Below, one piece after another: positions 17,255-42,991 of a DNA stretch of 64,000 bases. Position 1 is the first letter of the stretch. Each line of letters opens with the position of its first letter. The notes below the pieces were generated by a model that was not told the DNA's origin, did not search any database, and saw only the letters and a program-made list of their open reading frames with translations. Where the stretch lies: the sequence record LR588166.1, one strand, 5' to 3'. The translations under genes were made by a program, and so were the position numbers.

Positions 17255-17959
17255 ATGTCCGTACATATCACTCGTCAACGTACCGACAAGCAGCACGTCC
17301 TGGCACTGGCAATCAACGGCGTGGTCATCGGCCAGACGATGGCTACTTACACCACCCCGAGCAAGCGCACCTGGTCGGCGACCGCCGAAGTCGAGCTGGC
17401 AGACGGCACTGTCGTTCAGTTCGAGCAGAAAGAAGTGTTCAGCGCGATCCGCATCACCCGCGAAATCGAGCAGGCGCTCGACGGCAAGGAACTGGCGGCC
17501 AAGTACACCCCGGAACCGAAAGTTCCCGGGCAGAAGGGTCCGAAACCGCTCACCGACGAAAGCCGGCTCAGCAACGCGATCGCGATCGTCAAGGCGGCCA
17601 TCACCCACACCGGCTTCGACGAAGCTACCCTGGTGTTCGACGGGGTCGACAAGGCCAACTTCGAGCAGAACAGCACTTCCGTCGGCAACAAGCTGCGTCG
17701 CCTGGGCTTCGTCTTCGAACTCGGCGCCGGCAAGGCGAACAGCGGCAAGGGCTTCCTGATCAACCGCAAAGCGCAGGCCGAGGCAGAAGCCGACGAACGT
17801 AAGGCCAAGCGCGAAGCCGAGAAGAAGGAACGCGAAGAAAAAGCGGCGGCTGCCAAGCGCGAAGCCGACGAACGTAAGGCCAAGCGCGAAGCCGAGCGCG
17901 CCGAAAAGGTCGCTGAAAAGAACGCAGCGATCACCGGGGCAGCACAGGAAAGCAAGTAA
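17255..17959 (+). CDS. VFSAIRI-family protein 1 with a second domain and Ala/Lys/Glu coiled-coil tail
   Basis: 234 aa, GAGG RBS, GC-rich host-like codons; homologous to 36150 and 42554. Confidence 0.85.
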   Translation: MSVHITRQRTDKQHVLALAINGVVIGQTMATYTTPSKRTWSATAEVELADGTVVQFEQKEVFSAIRITREIEQALDGKELAAKYTPEPKVPGQKGPKPLTDESRLSNAIAIVKAAITHTGFDEATLVFDGVDKANFEQNSTSVGNKLRRLGFVFELGAGKANSGKGFLINRKAQAEAEADERKAKREAEKKEREEKAAAAKREADERKAKREAERAEKVAEKNAAITGAAQESK

Positions 17960-17974
17960 TTGCCCAACTGCGCC

Positions 17975-18002
17975 GAAAGGGGGAGCTATTGCTCCCCCTT
18001 TC
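17975..18002 (+). terminator. intrinsic terminator
   Basis: GAAAGGGGGAGC-TATT-GCTCCCCCTTTC. Confidence 0.8.
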
Positions 18003-18030
18003 TTCATGACCACACAATCTGTATACTACT

Positions 18031-18240
18031 ATGTCTTTAACTATATTTTCTATATCAGCTAATTTGTATACAATAATTTGGTATTCTGCGCAAGTGACAC
18101 AATGCTGTTATATAGACATAATAACACGCGACACTAATATTTTTATAACCTATCCATTTTATAATAACATATTTGTATCTAAAATTAGTTCTAATACAAC
18201 ACTTCAAGGAAAATATGAACACTATATTAGAGATAAGTAG
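18031..18240 (+). CDS. AT-rich paralog-like protein
   Basis: MSLTIFSISANLYTI. Confidence 0.5.
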   Translation: MSLTIFSISANLYTIIWYSAQVTQCCYIDIITRDTNIFITYPFYNNIFVSKISSNTTLQGKYEHYIRDK

Positions 18241-18388
18241 TGGAATAAGAAATAATTATATAACAATCTATCATTTTAAATATGACTACTATCTAGAAGT
18301 AAACACACCTTTGTTTTCTTTAATGATATCTATTCCGATAGTTCCTATATCAGACAATACTTGTATTACTTTAATAAAAAAGTATTAA
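18215..18388 (+). CDS. AT-rich paralog-like protein
   Basis: MNTILEISS start at ATG 18215. Confidence 0.45.
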   Translation: MNTILEISSGIRNNYITIYHFKYDYYLEVNTPLFSLMISIPIVPISDNTCITLIKKY

Positions 18389-18915
18389 TATGAATATACT
18401 CTTTATATCAAACAGTTTATCTAATATACTATATCATAAAGCTTATGATATACATATGATAGATATTAAGATTAATAATTCTACTTCTATTTGGCTTACA
18501 TATTCTTTCAATATTACTAAGGTATCATTTAAATATATTATCTGATTCGTTTTCTTATTGTATGAATTGCAATTGCAAATTACTCTTATTTGTAATTGCA
18601 TATAAACAATCAGTTGCTATTAAAAGTATTTGCTGTTAATATATTATATAACAGTGCAATTGATATTTTAAAATACAGTGTGCAATACATCTTACATGTA
18701 TTAAAATTTGTGTGTTACTTGTTTTGCATTAATGATTAATATACCTCTCTTACAGTACAAAACTAATACTATAAACAATTTGTTCGGGCGATCGTTCTCG
18801 AAAAGTATACAAGTGAGAGATGACAATCTAATTATACTTGTTAGTTTCTATATAGAAGGTTCTAAATATAGAAAATTTGTATATAACAAAGAATACCTCG
18901 AAGGGATTTCAGCAT

Positions 18916-19182
18916 ATGCAAACAACAATCGTTAATGCCCTAAAATCTATTAATGTAAAGTATTCGGATATATTTTACACAAATGGTAATTTGTGTAATA
19001 CCGTTACAATACGAAATATTCGCAAAAATGGTAAATTAGATTCGGCAGAACAAATTAATGTAGAATCAGTTGTGAGCAATTATTTGATTCAAAAAGATTT
19101 AAATTTGCCCTTTTCTATTCAGTGGGCAAATAATGATTGTTGCGAAGAGTATACTACACTTATTCTCTTCTTCAGAAAATAG
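18916..19182 (+). CDS. hypothetical protein
   Basis: ATG at 18916 downstream of AAGGG. Confidence 0.6.
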   Translation: MQTTIVNALKSINVKYSDIFYTNGNLCNTVTIRNIRKNGKLDSAEQINVESVVSNYLIQKDLNLPFSIQWANNDCCEEYTTLILFFRK

Positions 19183-19440
19183 TGTATGATTGTATTAAAA
19201 AGATATATTCGTTTGCATAGCATATACAGATTGTCCTACTATGCGCACAACATACATTTTAGCAAAACAAAGAAGATAATGCTTTACGTAGGAAACGCAG
19301 GTCCCGTACCCGTAACATGACAGTATATAGCGTTAAAATGTGCATTTTTTGCACGATTTTGCGGGGTATGCGTTACAAGCAATACACACATACTGCTTTT
19401 AAAATGCATGCTTGCATGCGCTTTGTAGGGGGTTTAAAAC

Positions 19441-19653
19441 ATGCTTAAATTAGTTACCACTGTGCTATACAACGTCTGTGTAGCTTCGTTAATAATGATT
19501 GTGTTTGTATGTGGTATAAATTTAGTAATGTATATAGATAACAATACTGACAATAATCCAGTTGTTATCTTTATTTCCCTTCTATCGGTTATTTGGGGCG
19601 TTGCGCGGATAAGCTATATGTTTGTTACTATCCAATTTCAGTCCAAGAAATAA
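19441..19653 (+). CDS. small two-TM membrane protein
   Basis: Two hydrophobic stretches; GGGG RBS. Confidence 0.65.
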   Translation: MLKLVTTVLYNVCVASLIMIVFVCGINLVMYIDNNTDNNPVVIFISLLSVIWGVARISYMFVTIQFQSKK

Positions 19654-19668
19654 AAGTATTGGTAACAT

Positions 19669-20010
19669 ATGATAGATAAAAACGGAAATACAGAAGACTT
19701 TGATTTTGATAAGGCATGCACTATAACTGATCTGTCTATTCCTCTTCAGCAAAAAATACAATCATATAAATTAAATAAAATATTGGTTATGGTTGCAATC
19801 CTTAAATATTCGAATATAAAACAAGAAATAGGATGTTTCGCTATTATATGGGATCATATAATAAAAATAACGGTTGAAGTAAAATGCAATCCGTATGCAG
19901 AAACACACATACTCATGCATGCGCATGTATTTTCTAATTCCGATTCATGTACTCATAGTGTATTGCTGAATTACAGAAACAAATATTTACCCACTAATTA
20001 TTATAATTAA
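19669..20010 (+). CDS. hypothetical protein
   Basis: 113 aa ORF. Confidence 0.65.
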   Translation: MIDKNGNTEDFDFDKACTITDLSIPLQQKIQSYKLNKILVMVAILKYSNIKQEIGCFAIIWDHIIKITVEVKCNPYAETHILMHAHVFSNSDSCTHSVLLNYRNKYLPTNYYN

Positions 20011-20011
20011 T

Positions 20012-20416
20012 ATGGAAGATATTCTTAAAATTGCCAAACTAATCGGGTACGTAAACATACATGCAAATAAACATTTTCAGTATGGTTTTAACAAAGATAT
20101 GGAACATGTATGTGTTAGTGCTAAGAGTAGGACAAGTATAAAGGGAATAAAATACCTTTATGTAGTAATGAATATATATTATATATATTGCCAGCAAGAA
20201 AGTGTTGCCGTTATATTAAACGAAGTAAACACTGATGAAATGCCTGTATTAGACAATCTTTATGCTAAGCTCAATGATTTAGTTACACATAAATCTGTTA
20301 TAAAATTTAAATATACAGAAATAACACAAGAACAAATAGATTTGTTGAATAATAGTGAAAGATATATAGTATATTTTGACTCTAATTTAGAATACGGAAT
20401 AGCTTCGTTTTATTAA
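20012..20416 (+). CDS. hypothetical protein
   Basis: 134 aa ORF coupled to upstream. Confidence 0.7.
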   Translation: MEDILKIAKLIGYVNIHANKHFQYGFNKDMEHVCVSAKSRTSIKGIKYLYVVMNIYYIYCQQESVAVILNEVNTDEMPVLDNLYAKLNDLVTHKSVIKFKYTEITQEQIDLLNNSERYIVYFDSNLEYGIASFY

Positions 20417-20428
20417 TTTGAGGAATAT

Positions 20429-20626
20429 ATGAAAAAACAAACAGGATTTACAGATTGGCCATTAATTAGTTTGGGTACAATTATTATCTTGTGTGTATGG
20501 GTACTAATTCTACAATACACAGAAATAAATGTACTAGAAGAAAAATGTAACAAAGTAGGTGGTATTTTTAATAACACCGTTTGCATACGGTCAGATGCAG
20601 TTATTAATTTAGATAAGGTAAAATAA
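20429..20626 (+). CDS. small membrane protein with type IV prepilin-like N-terminus
   Basis: GAGG RBS; MKKQTG-FT, hydrophobic helix, QY at mature positions 23-24, C-terminal Cys pair. Confidence 0.7.
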   Translation: MKKQTGFTDWPLISLGTIIILCVWVLILQYTEINVLEEKCNKVGGIFNNTVCIRSDAVINLDKVK

Positions 20627-20627
20627 A

Positions 20628-20885
20628 ATGCCAAAACTTTACGTTAACAAAAAACATGATACCATTTATCTTCAATTAGATCATTTCTCATCTAATACTG
20701 TATCTCCAATTAATTATAACGAAGATGTAGAATATGTAATTGATAGGATCCGTAGTCTGCACAAATCCGGCTTCGGATTTAGTCATATGAATACTCTACA
20801 AGAATATCTTACGGCAAGAACAGAACAGGATAAGAAGTTTAAGCTTAAAGTAGAAGACTTCGAAGTAGTATCATTTAAGATTTAA
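20628..20885 (+). CDS. hypothetical protein
   Basis: 85 aa ORF. Confidence 0.7.
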   Translation: MPKLYVNKKHDTIYLQLDHFSSNTVSPINYNEDVEYVIDRIRSLHKSGFGFSHMNTLQEYLTARTEQDKKFKLKVEDFEVVSFKI

Positions 20886-20906
20886 AATTATACACAATCA
20901 AAGTAT

Positions 20907-20935
20907 TTGACATTTGATGTGTATACTAGTATAAT
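20907..20935 (+). promoter_or_regulatory. consensus sigma70 promoter
   Basis: TTGACA-17-TATAAT, exact. Confidence 0.85.
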
Positions 20936-20941
20936 TTACTC

Positions 20942-21690: not shown

Positions 21691-21801
21691 TATATGTATA
21701 CAAGGGCATAATATGGCTGTTACTTGTTGACAATATGATATGTGTGTTACACTTCGTATATTAAATATACATTACAATGTTTTGATTATTAGGAACATAC
21801 T

Positions 21802-22389: not shown

Positions 22390-22392
22390 AGA

Positions 22393-23099: not shown

Positions 23100-23648
23100 A
23101 TGTGGGATATCAAAGAAGGGGATGATATCGAAGTCGAAGCAGTTATGGATGAACGAAGCTATGAGTGGACCGGCAAGTTACGTATCATCCAGTATCGGAC
23201 CCTTCAATCAGCTCAGTGGCGTGTTATTATCAATATAGTAGAATTTTGGAGTCATTCTACTGAAAGTATACTGAACGAACTTGGTATAGAAGCTAAACAC
23301 ATCACTAAAGGATATGCCACACTTAGTATGGTTCGTTTCCCGGATGTTGATTACCTATTTAGTGTAACACCCGATAATGCAGATTATGTAACTGTTAACC
23401 ACAGTGCAGTAGATATTTCTGACAGTTGGTTTGTTGCAAAAAACATAAAAGCAGTTATGTATCATTTGGGATCAGAAATCCAGATCACTCCGTGGTTTGT
23501 GCGTAAAGATAGTAGCGAGTCAAATTTCAATTGTATTGATAGATTAGTAGCTCTAGTAAAAGAGAATACTGATGTTGACACGTATCAGTACATCAAAGTA
23601 GGTTGTCCCGAGGACAAGTCATTTTACTTTGCGTGGATAGACAAATAA
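23100..23648 (+). CDS. hypothetical protein
   Basis: AGGAG RBS before ATG 23100. Confidence 0.8.
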   Translation: MWDIKEGDDIEVEAVMDERSYEWTGKLRIIQYRTLQSAQWRVIINIVEFWSHSTESILNELGIEAKHITKGYATLSMVRFPDVDYLFSVTPDNADYVTVNHSAVDISDSWFVAKNIKAVMYHLGSEIQITPWFVRKDSSESNFNCIDRLVALVKENTDVDTYQYIKVGCPEDKSFYFAWIDK

Positions 23649-23774: not shown

Positions 23775-24269
23775 GTGTTCGAGATGGAGCAAATAGTGAA
23801 TATGCGAGAAGTGACATTTCTTTCCGCAGTGGATGCCAGCAAGATCGAGACGCCGAGCAACGTCATCAGCATCGGCAGCAAGGGTGATTGGTATGCCTTT
23901 GCCTGCGATCACAAGCGCGTTCTGCGGCTGGAGTTTGATGACGTAGACGGATACGTGGGAAGCGATGGCTTTCGAGTGTTCAGCCACATTGACGCCAAGC
24001 AGATCCACGACTTCGTGAACGAGTGTGGTGATGAACCGATCATTGTTCACTGCCAAGCAGGCATGAGCCGATCCGCTGCGGTTGCCAAGTTCCTGGCTGA
24101 CAAGCGCGGCTACACGTTGAACCTGTCGAAGCCTTGCCTTGGAACCACGCAATTCTACAACCGCCACGTCTACGGAACGTTGAACCTCAACGACGCCGAA
24201 AGCATGAGCGCCTATTACGCAGAGATGGAGCTAGCCGACCGGCTGCGCGGCCATCCAAAGGAGTCCTAA
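23775..24269 (+). CDS. protein-tyrosine/dual-specificity phosphatase-like protein
   Basis: IIVHCQAGMSRS = HCX5R(S/T) P-loop; GC-rich. Confidence 0.85.
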   Translation: MFEMEQIVNMREVTFLSAVDASKIETPSNVISIGSKGDWYAFACDHKRVLRLEFDDVDGYVGSDGFRVFSHIDAKQIHDFVNECGDEPIIVHCQAGMSRSAAVAKFLADKRGYTLNLSKPCLGTTQFYNRHVYGTLNLNDAESMSAYYAEMELADRLRGHPKES

Positions 24270-24271
24270 TC

Positions 24272-24571
24272 ATGCCTGACATGAGAGAAGAGTTTGAAGC
24301 CGCAATCTTTGCGGAAGTGAATGAACAGCGGGCTGCTGAAGGTGAATTTGTCCTTCAGCATCCAGAAGGGCTATTTGCCCGCGATGACGATGGCTCCTAC
24401 TTGATCCGTTGGGTCAAGAGCGCATGGTGGGCCTGGCAAGCCAGCCGCGCAGCTCTGAGAGTGGAGTTGCCGAAACCTCACCCTGCATTTGAGTACGCAC
24501 CTAGAGCCAAGGTTTTCAATATAACTGACGTTGAGGTAGCCCTCCAGCAAGCCGGAATCGAGGTGAAGTGA
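24272..24571 (+). CDS. Pseudomonas prophage-type hypothetical protein
   Basis: AAGGAG RBS; MREEFEA...AWWAWQASRAALRVELP pattern. Confidence 0.8.
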   Translation: MPDMREEFEAAIFAEVNEQRAAEGEFVLQHPEGLFARDDDGSYLIRWVKSAWWAWQASRAALRVELPKPHPAFEYAPRAKVFNITDVEVALQQAGIEVK

Positions 24572-24718
24572 ATGAGAACGCCCATCTTCATCGGCGGATC
24601 AATTGGCATAGGAATCGCCTATCTGATGAATCCTGAATATCCCGCTATCGCGCTTGCAATGGTGTTTAGCGCGGGTACCTCATTGTTCATTCACTATCTA
24701 TCTGAGGTATGGCCATGA
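24572..24718 (+). CDS. small membrane protein (48 aa)
   Basis: Hand translation MRTPIFIGGSIGIGIAYL...; coupled at both ends. Confidence 0.6.
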   Translation: MRTPIFIGGSIGIGIAYLMNPEYPAIALAMVFSAGTSLFIHYLSEVWP

Positions 24719-24789
24719 CCGACCACGCAGAGCTGCGGAGGCTGGCTAAAGAAGTGATCCGAATTGAACGAAATGAGGATGCAGCATGA
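24715..24789 (+). pseudogene. truncated Ead/Ea22-like N-terminus (24 aa)
   Basis: MTDHAELRRLAKEV... then stop overlapping the next ATG. Confidence 0.4.
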
Positions 24790-25322
24790 GCATTGACTGG
24801 ACCAAGGCACCAGAGGGTGCGACGCACTACCAACCGGAATCACGCGGCTTCCATGCGGCATGGTTCCGACTTCAAGGGGGGAAGGCTCGCGAAATGTGGG
24901 TCGTGAGACCCAGCCGCGCGCTTGAGCACATCATCGATCCGACTGTCTTCGACGAGAGCATGCAGAACCTGATCGCCCGCCCCGTAGAAGCTGCCACCTG
25001 GAACGGCCAGGGTCTACCGCCGGTTGGCCTGATGGTGGAGTGGAAGGCAGGCCTTGATCACGACTGGCAGCGCGTAACTGTGCTTGCCTACGCCAATGGC
25101 GACGCGTGGTTTCAGCCCGAGGATGGCCCGTCTTTCATCGTCGGCAACCCGGCAAACTTCAGGCGTATCCGCACCCCCGAGCAGTTGGCCGCCGAGGAGC
25201 GGGAAAAGGCGATTAATCAGATGATTTCTGATGCTGGATACGTAGATCCGAAGATTGGCACATTTGTGGCTATGCGCAATCTCTACGACGCCGGCTACCG
25301 GCGCCGGGAGGAAGGGAAATGA
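24786..25322 (+). CDS. Pseudomonas phage hypothetical protein (MSIDWTKAPEGATHY family)
   Basis: Characteristic N-terminus and GLPPVG / RTPEQLAAEERE segments. Confidence 0.85.
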   Translation: MSIDWTKAPEGATHYQPESRGFHAAWFRLQGGKAREMWVVRPSRALEHIIDPTVFDESMQNLIARPVEAATWNGQGLPPVGLMVEWKAGLDHDWQRVTVLAYANGDAWFQPEDGPSFIVGNPANFRRIRTPEQLAAEEREKAINQMISDAGYVDPKIGTFVAMRNLYDAGYRRREEGK

Positions 25323-25585
25323 GCAGACTGACCGCTGAGCAAGCCCGTGACATAGCGCGAGCGAAAGACGATGTCGATACTATCCTCAACGACATCGCCA
25401 AAGCAGCCGCAGAAGGAAAGTACGTGTACACTACCCGCGCCTATGGGTTCGGCACAGGCGGCGGGCGGCGCAGCGACGCGATCCTCAAAGTGTTGCGTAG
25501 CCTCGGCTACGACTGTGCGGTGCATGCTGAGGGACGCCAGTCTGTTGACCTGTGGCTTGAAGTGAAATGGGGAGACAAGCCATGA
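25319..25585 (+). CDS. hypothetical protein
   Basis: ATGA overlap, GC-rich codons. Confidence 0.8.
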   Translation: MSRLTAEQARDIARAKDDVDTILNDIAKAAAEGKYVYTTRAYGFGTGGGRRSDAILKVLRSLGYDCAVHAEGRQSVDLWLEVKWGDKP

Positions 25586-25944
25586 CTGACACCAACGAAA
25601 TAAAAAAGCTAGCAAAACTGGCTACGCCGGGTCCGTGGTATGCGTCCTGGGAGGAAGGCGATGATATTGCATGGTCGAATCTGTTTCCTGTAATCCGAGC
25701 AGGCAATGGCGAAGTCGTGATCGGTAACGAAGGCTTTTACAGCGATCTGGACCAGGATAAGGCTAACGCCACTTTCTGTGCTGCTGCCAATCCCCGAGCC
25801 GTCCTAGACTTGCTGGACGAGAACGACAGACTAAAAAAGGAGAACGATGAACTTCGTCACCTTTGCTCCTGCGCTAAGCAATATAACCTCAGCATGACAC
25901 TGCGCAGAATGATTGACGCAGTCCTTAAAAGAGACAAGCCATGA
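25582..25944 (+). CDS. Ead/Ea22-like family protein
   Basis: LAKLATPGPW ... AAANPRAVLDLLDE. Confidence 0.8.
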   Translation: MTDTNEIKKLAKLATPGPWYASWEEGDDIAWSNLFPVIRAGNGEVVIGNEGFYSDLDQDKANATFCAAANPRAVLDLLDENDRLKKENDELRHLCSCAKQYNLSMTLRRMIDAVLKRDKP

Positions 25945-26129
25945 CCGACATTAAAAAGCTGAAGGAGTTAGCGGAACGGGCTACTCCTGGTCCCTGGTCT
26001 GCGTCTTGGAAGGAAGGCGATGACCATTTGGGGCGAATTGCTTACTTCGTGTCAACTGGTCAATACAACATCACAAAAGAAACAGTCTTCGACATAGTGA
26101 ATGTGGTTCCCGAAAATGTGTGCTCCTGA
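25941..26129 (+). pseudogene. second Ead/Ea22-like copy, short or frameshifted
   Basis: LKELAERATPGPW N-terminus, early stop, lacks ANP..VL.LLDE C-terminus. Confidence 0.45.
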
Positions 26130-26271
26130 CGCATCTACAGCATGGGAGGCTGCCTTTGTGTTTTTCACACTCGCAGGAGGACCATTGCTTTGCTGTATTG
26201 CAATTCTTCTAGCGCCGGAGCCATGCCGACAGACCAAACACACCCAGCGATAAGCGGGAAGAGAGGAATCC

Positions 26272-26376
26272 ATGCTAACCCTTTTTGATTTTGTTGCAAT
26301 GTGGGGGATTCTGCTTCTGACGATGTTTTTGCCTATCCGTCAGAAGCGTCGCCTTATTCAACTGCAAGACGCCTAA
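26272..26376 (+). CDS. 34 aa membrane peptide
   Basis: GAGG RBS; MLTLFDFVAMWGILLLTMFLPIRQKRR. Confidence 0.55.
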   Translation: MLTLFDFVAMWGILLLTMFLPIRQKRRLIQLQDA

Positions 26377-26392
26377 CAGGTAGGAGAACAGA

Positions 26393-26680
26393 ATGAGCAT
26401 CGTTAAAGTTGCCACTTTCCGAAACGCTGTCGCCCACCTTTTCCGCGTGGTCAATGTCGACTATCACGCTTGCGTGCGCCCGGCTGAGCTGCGCAACTGG
26501 CAAAGCATCGCTATCCGCGTTCTAGCCGAAGTCAATGCTCTAGAATGCAAGCGAGCCAACCAGGATGACCGTGATTACCAGCGCTGCACTGTTGATGCTG
26601 CCCGCGAACGTATAAGCCAAGCCGACTTGCGGCTCGCCCAGCTCGAAGCTGCCGGTGACCTCAAAGAAGACAAGAAATAA
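26393..26680 (+). CDS. hypothetical protein
   Basis: AGGAG RBS; host-like codons. Confidence 0.8.
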   Translation: MSIVKVATFRNAVAHLFRVVNVDYHACVRPAELRNWQSIAIRVLAEVNALECKRANQDDRDYQRCTVDAARERISQADLRLAQLEAAGDLKEDKK

Positions 26681-27925: not shown

Positions 27926-27952
27926 TAATTCTCTTTACACAGGAGAACGGTA

Positions 27953-28285
27953 ATGAATACCATCAGTGTAAGAAATATGCGTTATATTGTACGTGGTTTT
28001 GTTACTCATGCAATTGCCCGGGGCTATTCAGTTTCCGTTTATGAAGGGGGTGATTGGGCGATCAAGAAGAGTACTTCTGTAAAAGATATTATGAATTCTA
28101 TCATGTCTACCGACAGTGATACATTCTGTATTTATAATGCAGAGAAGGTGAAGGTAGGTCATGTGTATTGCATTTATTGCAATAGTGATTACGAAGTTAT
28201 TGCAGATTACACCGATTCCCCTCTTATGCAATCGATTCTCGTCGAAGCTCTACGTAGAGCAAATCGAATAGAAGAACTGAGCTGA
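27953..28285 (+). CDS. conserved phage early hypothetical protein
   Basis: AGGAG RBS; terminator at 28287-28317. Confidence 0.8.
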   Translation: MNTISVRNMRYIVRGFVTHAIARGYSVSVYEGGDWAIKKSTSVKDIMNSIMSTDSDTFCIYNAEKVKVGHVYCIYCNSDYEVIADYTDSPLMQSILVEALRRANRIEELS

Positions 28286-28390
28286 GAAAAAGAAGCAGGA
28301 ATTATTCCTGCTTCTTTTGTATGTTACAAGTTAAACAAGATTAATTTGCATTTGCTATGTAATAATATTTTCTATTGAATTAAATATTAT

Positions 28391-28627
28391 ATGTGTTACT
28401 ATATGCACAATGCTGTTAAACAAAGCGATAAATTAATAGCTATGGCAAATAAATTACATATCATCTGTGCAAAATGTGGTAGCACTCTTATAAACATAAA
28501 AATACCAAAAGTATGTGCAGATGATCCATTAAATGTAGTATATTTTTCGTGCGAAAACTGTAAGGAACTTACAGGCATATACGAATGGGCAGAAACAAAT
28601 AATCGCAAAGTAGTTGACGATAGGTAA
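28391..28627 (+). CDS. small zinc-finger-like protein
   Basis: CAKC ... CENC pairs. Confidence 0.65.
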   Translation: MCYYMHNAVKQSDKLIAMANKLHIICAKCGSTLINIKIPKVCADDPLNVVYFSCENCKELTGIYEWAETNNRKVVDDR

Positions 28628-33922: not shown

Positions 33923-34570
33923 ATGTCTAAGTATCTTTCTTTTAGCGTAAACGTAGACATGGACAATACCGGTCTGCTGAAATGGTTGCGTCCTACCACC
34001 GGTCGACTGGATGGATTCGAAGAGAGTGTTAAAAACTTCGTTTCTTCTTTCCGCTCAATCGAGTCGAGCCCTACGGTGTTTCAAGTTTACGATGACGATA
34101 ACCAGCCGTTGCAAGTAAGCAACATGAGCTGCTTCTTCCGATACTTTCCGGTGTATGGTATGTGCCTTGCACCGGGTTCGATGGTCAGGGAACAATATCG
34201 TCGGGAGATCCTCGACTATACTACTGACGAGTTCTGTTCATTCAGTAACTACTTCAGTGACGGCAAGGCCATCCGCGGCGGGGCAGTCTTGTGGTGGGAT
34301 GTAGAGAAAGACTTGGTATGGTCTGTTAGTCCCGAATTGATTCGCCTTGTATATGCCCGCTTGCAAAGTGATATGGACATCGGGTGGTATCATCTCGGGC
34401 AAGAAGTTATGGCTGTAGTTCCCCTTCGTTCGTATCCCAACGATGTTGCCCGATGGAAATATGTACAAGGTAATATCTGCGGCATCGATGATCAAGTGAG
34501 CATTCGCAGCAATGTCGACGGTCGAGTCACCCGGCTTAATTGGGAATACATCGTGAACCAAGGGGGATAA
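33923..34570 (+). CDS. hypothetical protein (215 aa)
   Basis: TTGACG promoter upstream; ATG at 33923. Confidence 0.8.
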   Translation: MSKYLSFSVNVDMDNTGLLKWLRPTTGRLDGFEESVKNFVSSFRSIESSPTVFQVYDDDNQPLQVSNMSCFFRYFPVYGMCLAPGSMVREQYRREILDYTTDEFCSFSNYFSDGKAIRGGAVLWWDVEKDLVWSVSPELIRLVYARLQSDMDIGWYHLGQEVMAVVPLRSYPNDVARWKYVQGNICGIDDQVSIRSNVDGRVTRLNWEYIVNQGG

Positions 34571-35584: not shown

Positions 35585-35678
35585 TTTCTTTTTCTTTTTC
35601 ATTATCTTTTTCTTTTTCATTATCTTTTTCTTTATCTTTTTCTTTATCTTTTTCTTTATCTTTTTCTTTATCTTTTAT
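35585..35678. repeat. 12-bp pyrimidine-rich tandem repeat (TTATCTTTTTCT)
   Basis: About 6 copies immediately before the 35682-35765 box cluster. Confidence 0.85.
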
Positions 35679-36149
35679 CATTGCAAATACAAATAATAAT
35701 TATTCTTATTTGCATTTAGTGATGTAAATAATTCTTATTTGTAATTGCGATTAATTCTTATTTGCTACAATAGATAGAATAAGAATAATTCACATTTGCA
35801 ATGCCGCTAAAAGCGCTGTAAGCGCTGTATGCTGTGTAGTAATGCTAAGCAATGCATTAGTACAGCTACGCGCACAAACGCTGTTATACGCGCTTGTAGC
35901 GCGTTTTAGGGCCCATGCGCATGCGTACACCTGTAGCTTTACATAGCAAAATGCAGAAAAGACGTCGTCTATTAACGTGCCTGTCTTAATAGAAATATAC
36001 AATTGTACAATACCAGCGAAATCCTACACACTACAGACATGCAAACAAGCAACGTGCTTGCAAGCATAAAAGTTTTTAAAAAGTAGTAGACATTGTGTAG
36101 CATCCCTAGTAAGCTACACACACATAAACAACACAACGGAGTACAAGCT

Positions 36150-36617
36150 ATGTCTAATGTAAGCATCCCTGCAGTAACGGTAGAGAATATCGGCACCCTG
36201 CGCATTGTGCGCACCGCTAACAAGGAGGTCGGAAGTGTGCTCGACCTAAAAGTTAACGGGGTAGTAGTAGGGCAAGCTTTCCCGCTCTACAGCACAAAAA
36301 CCCAGCGTAGCTGGAACGCGAGCATGCACGCTACCGTTAACGGCGTAGAGGTGCAGTTTGCACAGGAAGGCGTGTTCAGTGCAATCCGCATTGCACGGGC
36401 GTTCGAGGATGCAGTAAAGTATGCCGTTAGCAACGGCGAGCAAGGGCAACCCCTCCCCGCGCCGGCGGCGCAGTCCGATGCCCCGGCAACGGCAGAAGCG
36501 CAAGCAGAAGCCCCGGCGGCGCAGACCGAGGATGCGCCGGAGACCCCGGCAGCCGAAGCTAAGCCCGCCCGCAAAGGCGGCAGCAAAGGCGGCAGCAAGG
36601 GCGGCAGCAAAAAGTAA
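36150..36617 (+). CDS. VFSAIRI-family protein 2 with Ala/Pro/Lys/Gly tail
   Basis: TAGACA-17-TAAGCT promoter, GGAG RBS, ATG 36150; tail KGGSKGGSKGGSKK. Confidence 0.85.
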   Translation: MSNVSIPAVTVENIGTLRIVRTANKEVGSVLDLKVNGVVVGQAFPLYSTKTQRSWNASMHATVNGVEVQFAQEGVFSAIRIARAFEDAVKYAVSNGEQGQPLPAPAAQSDAPATAEAQAEAPAAQTEDAPETPAAEAKPARKGGSKGGSKGGSKK

Positions 36618-36630
36618 GCGCTGCTAACAC

Positions 36631-36745
36631 AGGAAAGGGGCAACTGCCCCTTTCCTTTTATGCCCTAGTTGTAAATGCAAATTAATCTTATTTGCATTTG
36701 CACAAGTCAATCTCCTGTTGCATTACTGCGGTAAGATGTTAGTAT
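36631..36745 (+). promoter_or_regulatory. terminator + Fur-like box + sigma70 promoter cassette
   Basis: AGGAAAGGGG-CAACTG-CCCCTTTCCTTTT, then TGCAAATTAATCTTATTTGCATTTGCA, then TTGCAT...TGtTAGTAT. Confidence 0.75.
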
Positions 36746-36785
36746 GTGCTTAGCAGTAACACATAACTAGCAGGAGCAATAGACA

Positions 36786-37034
36786 ATGGCTAAAGTATTG
36801 CATGTTAACAGCATCGGCAACATCGCCGAAGTGTTTACATCTGTAGACCTCGATAGTGCCTTGTTGCACGCAATCAAACGCTGTGCAACGATGGGCAAGG
36901 TTGAGGTTGTTGGTCCCAACGCTCCCGTGTTTGCTAGACACTACGACGCACTGACGGCGTACGACGTGCAGTGGCGCCTCGTTCCTCCGGGCTGCGGCGT
37001 TACCGTGTACGTCATTGCCGAAGACAGCAATTAA
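36786..37034 (+). CDS. hypothetical protein
   Basis: AGGAG RBS. Confidence 0.75.
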   Translation: MAKVLHVNSIGNIAEVFTSVDLDSALLHAIKRCATMGKVEVVGPNAPVFARHYDALTAYDVQWRLVPPGCGVTVYVIAEDSN

Positions 37035-37045
37035 GGAGAGACACC

Positions 37046-37348
37046 ATGAATCTCGTTCATTTGTGGATCAACGGGCGTGCTGTAACTGCCCGCAAGGTTG
37101 TCGGTAAGCACATTGTCCGCAATCCGAATAGTCCGATCGATATCGAGACTATCGACGTTGTTCGACTGCGTCTGCCCCGTGGTGTTCGTGCTAGCAGTTG
37201 GGCACTCCGTAAGGCAGTGTACCAGCTCATGGAGCAAAGCTGTAGCTGCTCGAGAGACTGTTGTGGACACTGGTTCGGCGGCGCACGCAAGATCTACATT
37301 AAAGGCAGAGACGTCAGTGTAGTTGCCGGGTACCAGCGCAATTACTAA
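37046..37348 (+). CDS. phage protein with C.C..DCCG.W motif
   Basis: AAGGAG RBS, ATG 37046; SCSCSRDCCGHWF. Confidence 0.8.
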   Translation: MNLVHLWINGRAVTARKVVGKHIVRNPNSPIDIETIDVVRLRLPRGVRASSWALRKAVYQLMEQSCSCSRDCCGHWFGGARKIYIKGRDVSVVAGYQRNY

Positions 37349-37416
37349 AGGAAAGGGGGCAACTGCCCCTTTCCTTTTATGTCCTAAGTGTAAATGCAAA
37401 TTATTCTTATTTGCAC
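37349..37416 (+). terminator. terminator + Fur-like box cassette (near copy of 36631)
   Basis: AGGAAAGGGGGCAACTGCCCCTTTCCTTTTATGTCCTAAGTGTAAATGCAAATTATTCTTATTTGCAC. Confidence 0.8.
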
Positions 37417-37566
37417 AGGGCAGTGAGATGCGAATGCAAACAAGAGGCATTCTTGATACGGCTGGGTGATAAGAATTGTTCACAAAAAGAAAAAGCTTGC
37501 GTTATGCTACACAGGTGCTAGTATGTGTATTGCAGTACCTATAAACATTAATAGCAGGATAAGAAA

Positions 37567-37887
37567 ATGGTTGACTTCAAAGGTTTTAACTGGGACGCAC
37601 TAGACCCAGAGGACAACGTTTCCACAGTTTCCATTAAAAATCACTACGAGGAACTCCTACAAAGTTTTGTTGACAACGGCATAGACTATGTGTTAGTCCG
37701 GCTGTCCCAGGAACTGCCGCACTACGAGGATTCAGATTATCCCTGCTACAAATTGGTTGACAAGTATGCAGGATGGATAGTAGGCTGGGACTACTACGGA
37801 TTTGTTGTGGAACGCATGGACACACGCCTTTTCTTTGACAACGGTACTGCAAAGGGTGTAATGGACTTTCTGGAAGCTAACAGCTAG
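37567..37887 (+). CDS. hypothetical protein
   Basis: TTGCGT...TAGTAT promoter; AGGA RBS; terminator at ~37893-37922. Confidence 0.8.
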   Translation: MVDFKGFNWDALDPEDNVSTVSIKNHYEELLQSFVDNGIDYVLVRLSQELPHYEDSDYPCYKLVDKYAGWIVGWDYYGFVVERMDTRLFFDNGTAKGVMDFLEANS

Positions 37888-38329
37888 CACAAAAAAGGAA
37901 GGGGCGCAAGCCCTTTTCTTTTGTCTGCAATTTCTGTGCAAATAAGAACTATTACAGTTGTGGTAAAAGCACAATGCAAATAAGACGCATTCTTGATTAG
38001 GCCTGATAATAAGTTCTTATTAACAGAAAAGAAACCGAATAAGAATAATTCTGAAAAAATAACCCTGCAGCGTAACACAAAGAGCTTGCAATTTGTAAGC
38101 CCTTTTTAATATGCATTTGTTAAGATTAGTTCTTATTTGCAATGATAATATCCCCGCCACGCAAATAAGAACTAATCTTAGAACAAATATTCACTTGATT
38201 TTTCTCCCAATATAGTGTATGTCTATATTAGATAAGATTAAGTCTTGTTTGCTTGTTACATTTTATATGTTGCAATGCTAAGGCAATGACAATATTATAT
38301 GTACAGCAACACAAAACAGGAGATATAAC

Positions 38330-38635
38330 ATGTCAGCAGAATTGAAGCGGTTGTTAGAGATTTTTCCAACCTTTAAATCATTCATTTATGCTAAAGGGGC
38401 ATATGGCATTGATGTTTGGAAGGCTACAGGTAGTGTTACTTTGGAACAGGTAACCAATGCTGTTAATGCAGGTAATGCAGAATGGCAATGTAAAGGTGAT
38501 CCAACATGCAGCCTGGAACAAAACAGCATGTATATTTTCATTACTATTCAGGAACCAGACTACACAGGAATGGTTGATATTGATATTTGTGTAAAGATTA
38601 CTAACGGTAATGAAGTAAGTTATCAAATAGCATAA
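38330..38635 (+). CDS. hypothetical protein
   Basis: TTGCAA-17-TATTAT promoter; AGGAG RBS. Confidence 0.8.
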   Translation: MSAELKRLLEIFPTFKSFIYAKGAYGIDVWKATGSVTLEQVTNAVNAGNAEWQCKGDPTCSLEQNSMYIFITIQEPDYTGMVDIDICVKITNGNEVSYQIA

Positions 38636-38637
38636 TA

Positions 38638-38698
38638 AAGGAAAGGGGCAACTGCCCCTTTCCTTATGACCATTGATGCAAACTATTCTTATTTGCAC
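38638..38698 (+). terminator. terminator + Fur-like box cassette
   Basis: AAGGAAAGGGGCAACTGCCCCTTTCCTTATGACCATTGATGCAAACTATTCTTATTTGCAC. Confidence 0.8.
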
Positions 38699-38771
38699 AT
38701 CAAAAAAATATCTATTGAATTCTATTATTATGATGCTATTATATATAGTGTAATTAACTCGGAGTAAAGTT

Positions 38772-39059
38772 ATGCAACCTCTAAAGCAATTGCCACAAAA
38801 CTACGCAATAATCACTCCAACTAGTGTTACTAATTTTAGCTGCACCTTTTCTGAAGCCTATTGCAAAATAAAAGCAGAATGCAAAAACGTTTTCTGTTGG
38901 GTTCGTTGGGGTGACCACGGCGTTGCAATGAAGCGCCGAATTGATCCACCGTATGTAGTGTATCGAAACAACGGACGACAACGAAAAGCAGTTCTTGTAA
39001 ACGTAGACAAAGCCCCTGTTAATTGGCAAGACGAACTTAAACAACTATACAAATGGTAA
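38772..39059 (+). CDS. hypothetical protein
   Basis: GGAG RBS; followed by terminator + box at 39061-39123. Confidence 0.8.
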   Translation: MQPLKQLPQNYAIITPTSVTNFSCTFSEAYCKIKAECKNVFCWVRWGDHGVAMKRRIDPPYVVYRNNGRQRKAVLVNVDKAPVNWQDELKQLYKW

Positions 39060-39240
39060 TTAAGAAAAGGGCTATTATAGCCCTTTTCTTATGACCGTTA
39101 ATGCAAACTATTCTTATTTGCACGATCCCGCGCTTATAACACAAGTATGTTACAAAAGCAAGAATAAAATTAACTTGACACCTATATGTAGAATATAGCA
39201 CAATGTGTTTATAAATTATATTACTACAGGAGTGTTAACC

Positions 39241-39612
39241 ATGTTCAAATGCAAATTGTTTGTAGTAGATCCTGTTTATAACAACCTTTGCTACACTCAA
39301 CAAATATGGCTCGATAGTGACATAAATGTGTGTAGCCAAATAAAGCGTATTATTTCTGACGTAGAATTGGCATGCGCAAACAGGATAGTAAATAATCCTC
39401 ATAGTCCACTATGCGTTAAATCGGCAGCATTAAAAATGGTTATGGACGGGCGCATTGACATCGAACTCAAAGATGTCGATAGTTACGTTGATCAATATAA
39501 AGACATTCTTCCTAGCACAAATATTTTGGGTGTTTTTAAACCGACGTTTTTATCTAACTGGAAAGAAGAGTGTGAACTTTATTTCCTCACTTGTGTTGAA
39601 AAAGACAATTAA
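39241..39612 (+). CDS. hypothetical protein
   Basis: AGGAG RBS before ATG 39241. Confidence 0.8.
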   Translation: MFKCKLFVVDPVYNNLCYTQQIWLDSDINVCSQIKRIISDVELACANRIVNNPHSPLCVKSAALKMVMDGRIDIELKDVDSYVDQYKDILPSTNILGVFKPTFLSNWKEECELYFLTCVEKDN

Positions 39613-39623
39613 TATAATATAAT

Positions 39624-39911
39624 ATGGAATATGATTTAAAAAATATTGTTTCGAAGACTATCTTATCTAATAAAATTAAGATAGTCTCTTTACGTACTGT
39701 AGTAAAAACTCAGTATAAAAGAGTAGACTTCCATTATAAGATAGAATGTGAAAATAGTTCTGCAAAACGTAATTTGGTGCTTGCCCGTATATGCAAACCA
39801 TTAGAACACACATTAGGTTCAAAACTTGTTTATGTAGATATTGTGCCTATCAAGTTTAAGAAAGATGAAATGCCATCTACTATTCTATCAGTAAGTGTAA
39901 TGACCGATTGA
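39624..39911 (+). CDS. hypothetical protein
   Basis: 95 aa ORF. Confidence 0.65.
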   Translation: MEYDLKNIVSKTILSNKIKIVSLRTVVKTQYKRVDFHYKIECENSSAKRNLVLARICKPLEHTLGSKLVYVDIVPIKFKKDEMPSTILSVSVMTD

Positions 39912-40062
39912 TATTTGGATTTGATATCTGGAAATATAATAGTAATTCTTATTTGCAATTATAATAAATTCTTGTTTACTTTTAAAATAAAAGCAAATTC
40001 TAGTTGCATAGCTAGCGGCACTGTGCTAGTATATTAAAAAATAAAGACAGGAGTGTTATTAC

Positions 40063-40245
40063 ATGCAAACCAAAGCAACCGAGTTGGCAGTAGGCGATGT
40101 TGTTTTCTACAACGGCATGAAAATGACTATCCAGAAAATTTCTAAAGGTCGGTGTGCAATAGATATTACACTAGTAAATACTTTGGCTAAACTCACATCT
40201 TATGTGACAGTCGACTACGACGAAGAATTTGAAGAAGTATTATAA
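40063..40245 (+). CDS. small beta-barrel-like hypothetical protein
   Basis: TTGCAT-17-TAGTAT promoter; AGGAG RBS; LAVGDVVFYNG. Confidence 0.75.
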   Translation: MQTKATELAVGDVVFYNGMKMTIQKISKGRCAIDITLVNTLAKLTSYVTVDYDEEFEEVL

Positions 40246-40262
40246 TGCAGAAATTATAGTCA

Positions 40263-40291
40263 TAAGAAAAGGGGCAATGCCCCTTTTCTTA
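40263..40291. terminator. bidirectional terminator between convergent genes
   Basis: TAAGAAAAGGGGC-AAT-GCCCCTTTTCTTA. Confidence 0.75.
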
Positions 40292-40528
40292 TAGTCCCAA
40301 CAAATGTTTGCCACTTTTGACTTGCATCATACGCACTTTCTTTTTGCGCATTTGCGTTCTTACGTTCAGGCTGTTGGGACCTTTGAAGCTATACAGTATT
40401 TCAGTAGTCCCGTCTTCATAGTTGCGTACCACATTTGCAACAATTTGACTGCCTTCCTGGAACGCTTCGATAAACACGCAGTAATTGAAATTTTCCTTGT
40501 TAGCGTTATGTGCGCGTAGTTGCATCAT
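40289..40528 (-). CDS. hypothetical protein (only minus-strand gene in the early region)
   Basis: Minus-strand CAGGAG RBS and TTGCAT...TATACT promoter at ~40568-40595. Confidence 0.7.
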   Translation of the reverse strand: MMQLRAHNANKENFNYCVFIEAFQEGSQIVANVVRNYEDGTTEILYSFKGPNSLNVRTQMRKKKVRMMQVKSGKHLLGL

Positions 40529-40882
40529 TTTCTGTTACTCCTGCGTTGTTTTGCTTTGTTATGTGTAGTATACGCTATGTGTGTACTAATGCAAGAATTT
40601 TCTTCCATTTTCTTTCAAATAAAATGTTATTAGCATCTATTCTGTTATAACATTTTCTACGACTTCATGTTTTGCAAATAAGAATTAATCGCATTTGCAT
40701 TCCTACCTATCTGCCTAAAATTTAGGCAGCCTGGGTGATTGTCTCCCCCCGCCCTATTACTGGTCTCTGTATAAAGATAATAGCACATTTGTATCTGCAT
40801 GCAAGCATTTTTTGTAGAATTTTTCTCTTGACATTCCTTGCTGTAGGCTACATTATGCACACACAGAGCAGGAGATACCATT

Positions 40883-41263
40883 ATGGCACTCATAGCATTA
40901 GTAGCAACCGCATATGACAAAGAAGGCGATAAGTTCGACTATGTTCGATATCTTAAAGCTCATATCAATTTTGTTTCTGCTCAAGATCAACTGAAAGAAT
41001 GGATCAAAAACAAAATTGATGCAAGTATAGCAGAAGTTAAAATCGGATTACGTGCAGAAATCGAAGTATTGGCCTATTTGGGAAACTATATAAGCCATAG
41101 TCAACGGATTATTAGTCCCGCTGGGATCATCATGTACATTGTTCTTGATGAGAAGTATGTTAATGAACTTCACGGTCAAATTTCTAATGCAATTGATTGT
41201 GAAGAAAAGAAACATGTAATAAAGAAAGAAGAAAACGTCACTTATATTGATTTTAAAAAATAA
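40883..41263 (+). CDS. hypothetical protein
   Basis: TTGACA-17-CATTAT promoter; AGGAG RBS. Confidence 0.8.
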   Translation: MALIALVATAYDKEGDKFDYVRYLKAHINFVSAQDQLKEWIKNKIDASIAEVKIGLRAEIEVLAYLGNYISHSQRIISPAGIIMYIVLDEKYVNELHGQISNAIDCEEKKHVIKKEENVTYIDFKK

Positions 41264-41299
41264 CTTGCATTAGCTGTAATGTATATGTATTATGTACTC

Positions 41300-41456
41300 A
41301 AGTTTGCAGCAAGACGTATTAATTTGTTTTGCTGTTAGTTGTAACTCCTGCTACCAAGTATGTGTTGAGCTAATGCTCCTGACTTGGTTCTTGGTACACT
41401 GGTTTGGGTGTACCGTTCTTGAGCTGCAAAGGGCTTGCCCGGCGCAGCTTTTTTTT
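41300..41456 (+). ncRNA. candidate sRNA (~155 nt)
   Basis: TTGCAT-17-TATTAT at 41265-41293; four hairpins; terminator with T8. Confidence 0.55.
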
Positions 41457-41536
41457 GACTAATATTATTCATTTGACAAAAAATAATAATTAAAAATATA
41501 ATAGCTTAGTGTATAACTTCCCATATTAGGCTAATT

Positions 41537-41908
41537 ATGAAATTTGTTATTGCTGCTATTGCATTGTCTTTGTCCACACTAGTTTCTGCAGAATCTATTT
41601 CTGAAGTTAAGATAACTAAAGAAACATGCCTTACACTTCTGGAATTATCTAAGATTCATGTTGATATGGTAGTAAATGAACATATGAATGCAATACAAAT
41701 TGCATCTCATATGGATATTGTATCTAATTTGTATAAGAATAATAATAGTAAATGGCTTGCATTCTTGCAGGCTCAAGCAAATATTTCAAAATTAATTGAT
41801 GACGTATATGAGTTTTCATCTACTGAAGAAAGAAAGATTATTCCTCTAGCCATATTTAACGGTTGTATGGAAAGAGTTGGTAATACTTTTGAAATATATA
41901 AGAAATAA
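41537..41908 (+). CDS. secreted/periplasmic protein
   Basis: Signal peptide MKFVIAAIALSLSTLVSA; Cys pair. Confidence 0.75.
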   Translation: MKFVIAAIALSLSTLVSAESISEVKITKETCLTLLELSKIHVDMVVNEHMNAIQIASHMDIVSNLYKNNNSKWLAFLQAQANISKLIDDVYEFSSTEERKIIPLAIFNGCMERVGNTFEIYKK

Positions 41909-41909
41909 T

Positions 41910-42221
41910 ATGTATGTATATGTAGTCCACGGAATAGTCAATACAGGCGTTGAGACTAATATTTGTGATATAGAACGTTACGTTACAGTTAACGACTTCC
42001 ATGCTGTAGCAAAGTTTCTTAATTTTAAAGAACATATAGCAGCAAACCCAAACTTATATATACGATTAATTACTACTGGATTGAATACTAAAAAGAACAT
42101 ATTAGAATTAAACTTATCGAAAAAAGAATATGTAGTATCGGGTTTTAGAGTTACATCAACTAATATAAATGAATGCATTGAATATTACCTGTGTAGAAGG
42201 ATATTTAAGTTACATGATTGA
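41910..42221 (+). CDS. hypothetical protein
   Basis: ATG 1 nt after upstream stop. Confidence 0.65.
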   Translation: MYVYVVHGIVNTGVETNICDIERYVTVNDFHAVAKFLNFKEHIAANPNLYIRLITTGLNTKKNILELNLSKKEYVVSGFRVTSTNINECIEYYLCRRIFKLHD

Positions 42222-42553
42222 ATTTATATTAAAATCCCTTTTATTAACTTCAGTTGTCAGTGTTGGCATACTACTGATATTCATTATTATTTCACTGTTA
42301 ATGTTTGGCTTAGCACCGATAGTTCCATTCCTTATTTAATTTTAATTATTTGCAAGCAAATGCAAATGCGAACAATTCTTATTATCCAGCAGGCCACTGT
42401 ACCTAATCTTCGTTAGATAAAATCTATTAGAATCTACACAGTCCATTAAAACGTTCAATTGTACATGGTGGCCAGATCTGCATATACTACACACATGAAG
42501 CAAGCAAACAGCGCTTCATAAACAAACCCAAATACAGCTAGGAGTTCCAAATC

Positions 42554-42991
42554 ATGACCAAAGCAACCGTTACCGTCGAGCAATCCGCAATCAAACTGGT
42601 CCGCCGCAACCTGGAAGGGCACCGGCAAGCCCTGCTGCTGAACGGCGTCGAAGTAGGCAGCAGCGAAGCGTTCTACAAGACCAAAACCCAGCGCACCTGG
42701 TCGGCGAAGATCGACGCCAACATCAACGGCAAGGACATCGTCCTCGAACAGAAAGGTGTGTTCAGTGCGATCCGGATCGCCCGGGCGATGGAACAAGCAA
42801 TCCTGTTCATCCTGACCGACGGCAAAGAAGGCTCCGAGATGCCGGCTAGCACGCTGAGCAAGGAAGAACAAGCCCACAACCTGGTCAAGGCAGTAGTCCA
42901 GGTCGCCGCCCACGCTGTCCAGTCCGGCGCCGCTGCCCCGGCGAAGAAAGGCAGCTCGAAGAAGCGCAAAGAAGCCCAGCCGGAAGCATAA
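42554..42991 (+). CDS. VFSAIRI-family protein 3 with Ala/Lys tail
   Basis: AGGAG RBS; KTQRTWSA ... EQKGVFSAIRIAR. Confidence 0.85.
   Translation: MTKATVTVEQSAIKLVRRNLEGHRQALLLNGVEVGSSEAFYKTKTQRTWSAKIDANINGKDIVLEQKGVFSAIRIARAMEQAILFILTDGKEGSEMPASTLSKEEQAHNLVKAVVQVAAHAVQSGAAAPAKKGSSKKRKEAQPEA

Follow-up and report, generated by a model that had tools for sequence, protein, structure and literature searches.

Three paralogous genes are spaced along the stretch of DNA considered here, a 64,000-nucleotide piece (hereafter the window) of record LR588166.1, the genome of Pseudomonas phage vB_PaeM_MIJ3, a PA5oct-like jumbo phage; window positions are record positions minus 186000. We call these genes P1 (17255-17959, 234 amino acids), P2 (36150-36617, 155 amino acids) and P3 (42554-42991, 145 amino acids); all three are open reading frames (ORFs) on the + strand, and they are written in host-style codons, probably for bulk production directly after infection. 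By megablast, window positions 36000-44000 match record positions 222000-230000 at 100%, and align at 95-97% with 10 more records, all of them PA5oct-like jumbo phages of the genus Wroclawvirus (PA5oct, Paride, Callisto and others). The window has a GC content of 0.35, and it contains neither tRNA genes nor Rfam matches at gathering level. In PA5oct (MK797984) the counterparts are EST35_0038 (9167-9871) for P1, EST35_0086 (27937-28407) for P2 and EST35_0098 (33964-34425) for P3, all inside its annotated 39,080-bp terminal repeat; using coordinate offsets from PA5oct, we infer that the repeat corresponds to approximately 8.1-47.7 kb of the window.

The three genes and their family

The N-terminal 85-100 residues of P1, P2 and P3 share 41-46% identity and 25 invariant columns, including the VFSAIRI stretch by which the original prediction, made from the letters of the window, had grouped them, and the gene coordinates that it gave are confirmed. 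Searched against all stop-to-stop frames of the window, a profile of the three paralogs finds P1-P3 at E-values of 1e-39 to 1e-50 and no fourth copy of the domain (next best E 1.5), whilst tblastn of the related records places it at three sites in 10 of 11 and at four in the remaining one. Relative to PA5oct and Paride, the + frame has 8 substitutions at first, 4 at second and 34 at third codon positions. P1 alone differs from EST35_0038 (99% identity) by 14 substitutions, 10 of which lie at codon position 3, and the length differences from PA5oct and Paride are multiples of three, located in the tails. Because of this excess at third positions, the in-frame indels and the paralogy, we consider the + strand ORFs to be real genes; judged by these comparisons, they are shown here to be under purifying selection in the + frame. 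On grounds of codon positions and paralogy, we also reject two annotated antisense ORFs, MIJ3_00305 (- strand, 17234-18007), which lies over P1, and Paride_0391 (- strand, 42455-42913), which lies over the P3 ortholog: both are mis-calls of a kind invited by GC-rich DNA. Each paralog is monocistronic, as had been proposed, with no other gene within the unit of P1, P2 or P3.

How far does this family extend? Searched exhaustively with the family profile, 1.84 billion representatives gave 25 matches at E <= 0.001, of which 21 small-protein clusters of 75-244 amino acids were kept, i.e. the three paralogs and 18 further ones, whose sources are PA5oct-type phages or metagenomic phage-like contigs and nothing else. 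The four matches set aside are giant Ig, cadherin or Cna-B repeat proteins, which are not relatives: their scores are sums of many repeats at 1-11 bits each, against 40-160 bits per domain within the family. In the 21-sequence alignment Gly37, Gly41 and Trp55 (P2 numbering) are invariant, and Ala43, Ala45, Arg53, Gly65 and Ser77 are conserved in at least 90% of members. The original prediction had recognised no family, and our wider searches bear this out: counting a score above the family threshold or an E-value below 0.001 as a match, we found no family in Pfam-A, PHROGs v4 or NCBIfam 20 for P1-P3 or for the 21 members (best E 0.015-0.27, on the low-complexity tails), and the family profile gave no match among PDB chains at E-values up to 1, the middle domain of P1 reaching 0.26 at best. 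No relatives were found in cultured phages outside the genus, a word-indexed protein search returning genus-level copies only, nor in IMG/VR; the JGI metagenomes contributed one contig, in which the matched N-domain (residues 1-100) is identical to that of P2.

Parts of the gene order are conserved with the proteins. P0012, a 244-residue member found at metagenomic loci L005 and L006, has the complete layout of P1, and L005 keeps in addition the gene upstream of P1 (42% identity) and a spacer of ~1 kb with tandem TTGAC-type sites. At locus L007, a P2-like gene is followed by the two small genes that follow P2, and in all of the metagenomic contexts small genes without Pfam matches are arrayed in a single direction. 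From these comparisons of sequence and gene order, it is firmly supported that P1-P3 are old paralogs of a small, previously undescribed family, which is restricted to jumbo phages of the PA5oct type and a handful of uncultured relatives. The genes themselves are already public as 'hypothetical' or 'structural' proteins, and early ORFan proteins of large phages are a known kind; neither the paralogy nor the domain nor the codon pattern was found described in the PA5oct and Wroclawvirus literature, most of which was covered in part.

AlphaFold2 predicts the shared domain, 75-96 residues long, as a five-strand antiparallel sheet (strands 5-9, 15-20, 23-32, 38-48 and 53-61) with one helix (64-75). 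The predicted local distance difference test score (pLDDT) was 80 with an input of three sequences and rose above 90 for the N-domain of P1 with an input of 24. What follows this domain differs between the paralogs. In P1, the N-domain (residues 1-76, 17255-17482) leads through a Lys/Pro linker (residues 77-100, 17483-17554) into a middle domain (residues 101-172, 17555-17770), predicted as alpha-beta-beta-alpha-beta-beta at a pLDDT of about 77, and then into a single long Glu/Lys/Arg/Ala helix (residues 173-234, 17771-17956), modelled over 59 residues, in which large hydrophobic residues are nearly absent and the net charge is +1. P2 has an N-domain (residues 1-96, 36150-36437), an acidic Pro/Ala/Glu linker (residues 97-139, 36438-36566; net charge -7) and a 16-residue basic Gly/Ser/Lys tip (residues 140-155, 36567-36614; net charge +6) that is encoded by a 12-bp tandem repeat. 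In P3, the N-domain (residues 1-92, 42554-42829) is followed by a helix-forming stretch (residues 93-126, 42830-42931), which aligns with helix 1 of the P1 middle domain, and by a basic tip (residues 127-145, 42932-42988; net charge +4). Such a tip, with a net charge of +2 to +6 over the last 16 residues, is found in P2, in P3 and in 6 of the 7 closest relatives (P0005-P0011). The tails are partly encoded by short tandem DNA repeats, and their length differs between strains. The tails had been described as histone-like, which overstates them: the tail of P1 is close to neutral (+1), the linker of P2 is acidic (-7), and the basic parts of P2 and P3 are short tips and no long, strongly basic tails. 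A distant member, P0018 (L013, 213-677), ends in a Gly/Arg/Pro-rich basic tip that looks like a minor-groove-binding hook, a resemblance to be taken as a lead only.

When the predicted models were compared with known structures, which had been suggested as a check on the shared domain, no characterised family was reached. In Foldseek, ThermoDBP-RP2 is the top match for both of two independent models (E 0.05-0.12, probability 0.82-0.96), with levivirus coat proteins and Pur-alpha next, where the same fold would be called at an E-value below 0.001 or a template modelling score (TM) above 0.5. Against BFVD, Foldseek returned the paralogs themselves only.

Codon usage, transcription and the upstream region

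P1-P3 stand out from their surroundings by composition, with a GC content of 0.60-0.62 and a GC content at third codon positions (GC3) of 0.78 in P1, 0.65 in P2 and 0.76 in P3, compared with 0.16-0.35 in typical neighbours. The codons TTA, ACA, AGA, CCA, GGA and TCA, which are those matched by the phage's own tRNAs (PMC7318152), make up 2 of 534 codons in the pooled paralogs and 9.2% in 46 AT-rich genes of the region; the favoured codons are instead CTG, CGC, GGC, ACC, CCG, AGC, ATC, AAC and TTC. Of the highly-expressed-type host codons that had been proposed, what is shown here is host-like usage with GC-ending codons. The claim of GC-rich genes in otherwise AT-rich DNA stands for the paralogs, but they are not alone, as ~10 other genes of the repeat have a GC3 above 0.55 (in 23802-26680, 36786-37348, 44103-44399 and 45974-46465).

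Could the three genes simply have been acquired recently, by horizontal transfer from the host or from Pseudomonas phages rich in GC, with no codon selection at all? The other GC-rich genes of the repeat suggest as much for themselves: relatives of 24786-25322 occur in 143 phage records, most of them of other Pseudomonas phages, and several of these genes have PHROG matches. The paralogs, however, have no relative in cultured phages outside the genus or in IMG/VR, and the DNA of their shared domain is just 54-60% identical whilst the bias is kept in all three. Where their residues are identical, the same codon is used at a frequency of 0.39-0.63, against 0.51-0.53 expected from shared bias alone; codon sharing is therefore at the level of bias only, and the synonymous sites are saturated and the bias maintained. 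Further, the family gene tops its locus in GC3, or lies far above its flanks, at 6 of the 8 independent metagenomic loci that carry a member, representing six other phage backgrounds: 0.70 against 0.53-0.66 in neighbours (L004), 0.77 against 0.34-0.58 (L005), 0.87 against 0.52-0.74 (L007), 0.71 against about 0.51 (L008), and 0.77 and 0.85 beside flanks with a GC content of 0.44 and 0.38 (L009 and L013, respectively). The two most distant loci, L011 and L014, have no GC3 excess. Because outside relatives are lacking, synonymous sites are saturated and the GC3 excess recurs in these loci, we favour a codon bias that is selected, and we regard plain import as very unlikely. More broadly, it is firmly supported that P1-P3 are separately transcribed early-region genes under selection for host-type codons.

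In PA5oct, rifampicin abolishes phage production, early transcription runs nearly entirely on the + strand from promoters of TTGAC / TATAATA type, and most genes of the repeat from gp34 to gp105 are highly transcribed at 5 min by the host RNA polymerase, as reported for the block as a whole (PMC7318152). P1-P3 lie in this block, which supports the proposed early expression at the level of the block. Upstream of P1 are two tandem sigma-70-like matches (17048-17076 and 17143-17171, + strand, 9/12 each), each after an A-rich stretch, and a comparable pair of TTGAC-type sites precedes the P1-like gene at L005; P3 has one such match (42460-42488, + strand, 9/12). The sigma-70 promoters assigned to all three genes thus have candidate matches for P1 and P3, and none directly upstream of P2 in the scan. 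A perfect hairpin of 11-12 bp lies within 15-20 nt of each stop codon: after P1 with a 12-bp stem (17975-18002, + strand; folding free energy, dG, -25.7 kcal/mol, z -5.1), after P2 with an 11-bp stem and then a U run (36631-36656, + strand; dG -21.9 kcal/mol, z -5.0), and after P3 with an 11-bp stem and no U run (43005-43030, + strand; dG -20.4 kcal/mol, z -5.1). With z-scores of about -5 throughout, these agree with the strong terminator expected after each gene, the hairpin of P3 being the one without a U run.

The intergenic DNA of the region carries a 12-mer, TTCTTATTTGCA, in 24 copies (at most 1 mismatch) against 1.2 expected, all of them intergenic, between 16757 and 44020, and often directly after terminators. 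In context it is the right-hand arm of a longer, imperfect inverted repeat (about 27-30 bp), hereafter the dyad. A cluster of five copies upstream of P1 (16757-16876) is the biggest in the window and corresponds to what the original prediction had read as boxes; three more are clustered upstream of P2 (35703-35766), and single copies follow the P2 terminator (36685-36696) and the P3 hairpin (43052-43063). In total, 10 of the 24 copies lie at most 600 bp from P1-P3, a zone that makes up 19% of the span (P about 0.009 in a binomial test, for copies that are not independent). The motif is also enriched in related metagenomic loci: its 9-mer core occurs 8 times at L007 against 0.1 expected, flanking the P2-like gene on both sides, and its 7-mer core 11 times at L005 against 3.0 expected. 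The Fur-like boxes that had been proposed here do not stand up, as the best upstream scores of 13-14/19 compare with at least 13 in 35% of all 600-bp windows, a comparison of low weight. The dyad is a group-specific regulatory element and not a Fur box.

Next to these clusters lie pyrimidine-rich tandem repeats, one of 42 bp x 3 at 100% identity (16627-16753, + strand), between the terminator of a non-coding RNA (ncRNA) and the dyad cluster of P1, and one of 12 bp x 7.5 (35587-35676) directly upstream of the dyad cluster of P2. The PA5oct annotation places an 'extensin-like protein', EST35_0037, over the first of these, where there is probably no gene. The ncRNA is the equivalent of PA5oct ncRNA001, mapped from PA5oct 8263-8498 to 16351-16612 (+ strand) together with its terminator, ~640 bp upstream of P1, which is the only paralog beside a reported ncRNA. 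It folds better than all 200 shuffled versions (z -3.7), and in comparison with the distant relative L005 (2713-3020) several of its helices are kept with compensatory changes (13 of 42 pairs), among them a 7-bp hairpin in which five changes are two-sided. Such helix conservation, from two sequences, is a hint, and the ncRNA may belong to the same conserved module as P1.

Several further features of these spacers deserve a mention. At L005, upstream of the P1-like module, 737-838 gives a Y RNA-like match (YrlA, RF02553) of 45.9 bits (E 1.6e-7), short of the gathering score, and 1270-1373 a second one of 22.5 bits. Near-perfect long palindromes of hairpin-forming DNA (16054-16123, 16144-16207 and 16748-16839) lie between the gene upstream and P1, with microRNA-precursor-like Rfam matches at E-values of 0.001-0.03. 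A ribozyme was considered for the conserved hairpin upstream of P1 and rejected, as Rfam gave no such match, but only the microRNA-like ones that reflect the palindromes. By eye, the DNA between dyad cluster and promoter is locally GC-rich, with alternating purine/pyrimidine runs, at 35800-35960 for P2 and at 16985-17010 for P1.

As for the neighbouring genes, 23100-23648 is the putative counterpart of PA5oct gp52 by gene numbering, i.e. from locus tags and not from sequence, and the GC-rich 23802-24269 weakly matches a dual-specificity phosphatase (Pfam E 9e-6, below cutoff). The gene directly after P3 (43148-43636, + strand) matches pyrimidine-dimer DNA glycosylase (PF03013) at 20.6 bits, short of the cutoff of 23; sister phages list it as 'endonuclease V' or 'DNA binding protein'. 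PA5oct DNA is reported to carry a modified guanine (bioRxiv 10.1101/2025.03.31.646159). Beyond the repeat lie a 1758-residue ORF (58708-63984, - strand) and, at 53543-58556, a block of large genes on the - strand.

What P1-P3 may do

What, then, would a phage gain from three such genes? We tentatively rank first a scenario in which the unmodified host apparatus would translate P1-P3 in bulk once the terminal repeat enters the cell, without phage tRNAs, and the products would act as stoichiometric nucleic acid binders, on the incoming AT-rich phage DNA or on abundant early RNAs. Binding would occur via the sheet face and a conserved Tyr/Lys/Arg/Trp loop, aided by the basic tips, and P1 might possibly be carried in with the DNA. 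This account falls somewhat short of an even chance, and it takes first place because of the recurring, non-significant likeness to proteins that bind nucleic acid with a sheet face, together with the conserved loop and the basic tips. Several points weigh against it. Neither of the two models has a PDB match in Foldseek at E <= 0.001 (best E 0.05, TM 0.2-0.4), and there is no sequence relative with a known function; the N-domain is near neutral in net charge in P1 (-1) and just mildly basic in P2 and P3, and by charge the tail of P1 and the linker of P2 are not like DNA binders. In addition, the promoter scan is without a match directly upstream of P2, and the virion mass spectrometry list of PA5oct also holds non-virion enzymes, so that the detection of P1 in it may be carry-over.

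Host-protein binding comes second in our ranking, followed by a virion role of P1, regulation through the dyad and plain import. Perhaps P1-P3 are host-takeover or anti-defence proteins that bind a host protein, such as a nuclease, the AT-directed silencers MvaT/MvaU or RNA polymerase, with the shared domain as a protein-binding module and the tails as decoys or spacers; this is possible, if doubtful. PA5oct gp52, in the same repeat, is a proven inhibitor of a host nuclease (anti-END1; bioRxiv 10.1101/2025.03.31.646159), early anti-MvaT proteins are known from P. aeruginosa phages (PMC8501957), the acidic linker of P2 could mimic nucleic acid, and three diverged copies with differing tails would fit an arms race. 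On the other hand, P1-P3 have no similarity to known anti-defence families, PA5oct has no annotated anti-defence genes according to its authors and PhageExpressionAtlas, the strong codon tuning suggests stoichiometric amounts and not the inhibitor of a rare host protein, and the conserved loop fits nucleic acid at least equally. The proteins, or at least P1, might otherwise be internal or decoration proteins of the virion, packaged with the DNA, their early transcripts being incidental: the P1 ortholog EST35_0038 is annotated 'structural protein, ESI-MS/MS' (electrospray ionisation tandem mass spectrometry), and P1, with its long rigid helix and additional domain, could be a spacer within an assembly. 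We consider this unlikely, since P1 alone was detected in virions, and not P2 or P3, on a list that includes the enzymes mentioned above; P1 also lies in an early region that the host polymerase reads at 5 min, a long way from the structural modules, and the MIJ3 annotation of P1 is on the wrong strand, hence offers no independent confirmation.

The dyad invites another explanation, that P1-P3 are sequence-specific regulators of this motif, including autoregulation via the clusters before their own genes. Its two biggest clusters immediately precede P1 and P2, it is over-represented near the three genes, and its arrangement on both sides of a P2-like gene recurs at L007. The predicted domain, however, is no helix-turn-helix or other known sequence-reading fold, 14 copies of the motif are found away from P1-P3, its reader could equally be a host factor or a different phage protein, and L004 has a family member with zero copies; overall, such a role seems quite improbable. 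A more far-reaching version of the nucleic-acid-binding proposal can also be imagined, in which the family is a phage 'chromatin' or RNA partner with a new fold, GC-recoded to evade both AT-directed silencers and the need for phage tRNAs and hence the very first products, which would coat the AT-rich DNA or pair with the ncRNA beside P1 and keep the repeat expressible, P1 being preloaded in the virion. We give this full picture a small chance, on a par with the virion role.

Significance and comparison with known systems

Phages of the PA5oct type (PA5oct, MIJ3, Paride and Callisto) are under study for use in therapy, Paride also because it kills dormant cells, and their early genes are mostly blank. 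Our results single out three of the ~100 genes of the terminal repeat as a family selected for host-style translation, a trait that recurs in other genomic backgrounds and a clean case of codon tuning in a phage far from its host in composition (33% versus 66% GC). They also correct strand errors in two public records, of a kind that would hide proteins from proteomic searches, and define a conserved upstream module of ncRNA, pyrimidine repeat, dyad cluster and tandem promoters. If it is true that the domain binds nucleic acid, it would be a new fold among phage-encoded architectural proteins.

Of the known structures, ThermoDBP-RP2 of Aeropyrum pernix (PDB 4psn, 4pso), an archaeal protein that binds single-stranded DNA, comes closest, with a sheet-plus-helix domain of similar size and a helical extension. 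Nevertheless, it falls outside the same-fold range (E 0.05-0.12, TM 0.2-0.39, root-mean-square deviation about 6 A), shares no sequence similarity and belongs to another organism and context. The coat proteins of single-stranded RNA phages (MS2, Qbeta, GQ-907 and ESE017) and Pur-alpha likewise combine an antiparallel sheet with helices on one side, the sheet face holding RNA or single-stranded DNA, but probabilities of 0.06-0.3 and root-mean-square deviations of 7-16 A set them apart, the coats again lying outside the same-fold range, and a capsid role is inconceivable for P1-P3.

In their overall layout, P1-P3 recall SSB and T4 gp32, in which a globular binding domain is followed by a disordered charged linker and a short conserved tip of opposite charge. 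The layout is alike, whereas the P1-P3 family has no oligonucleotide/oligosaccharide-binding (OB) fold and no family match, and its charges are reversed, with an acidic linker and a basic tip. LUZ24 Mip, which acts against MvaT, and PA5oct gp52 are also small early proteins of Pseudomonas phages, gp52 even from the same terminal repeat; no homology was seen, the profile search of the window yielding P1-P3 only, with no direct comparison made for Mip. Finally, bacterial histone-like proteins of the AlgP, Hc1 and HupB type carry Lys/Ala-rich tails, and low-complexity Ala/Lys C-termini are what they have in common with P1-P3; where the bacterial proteins extend into long basic repeats, the phage tails have a net charge of +1, or are acidic and end in a basic tip of 16-19 residues.

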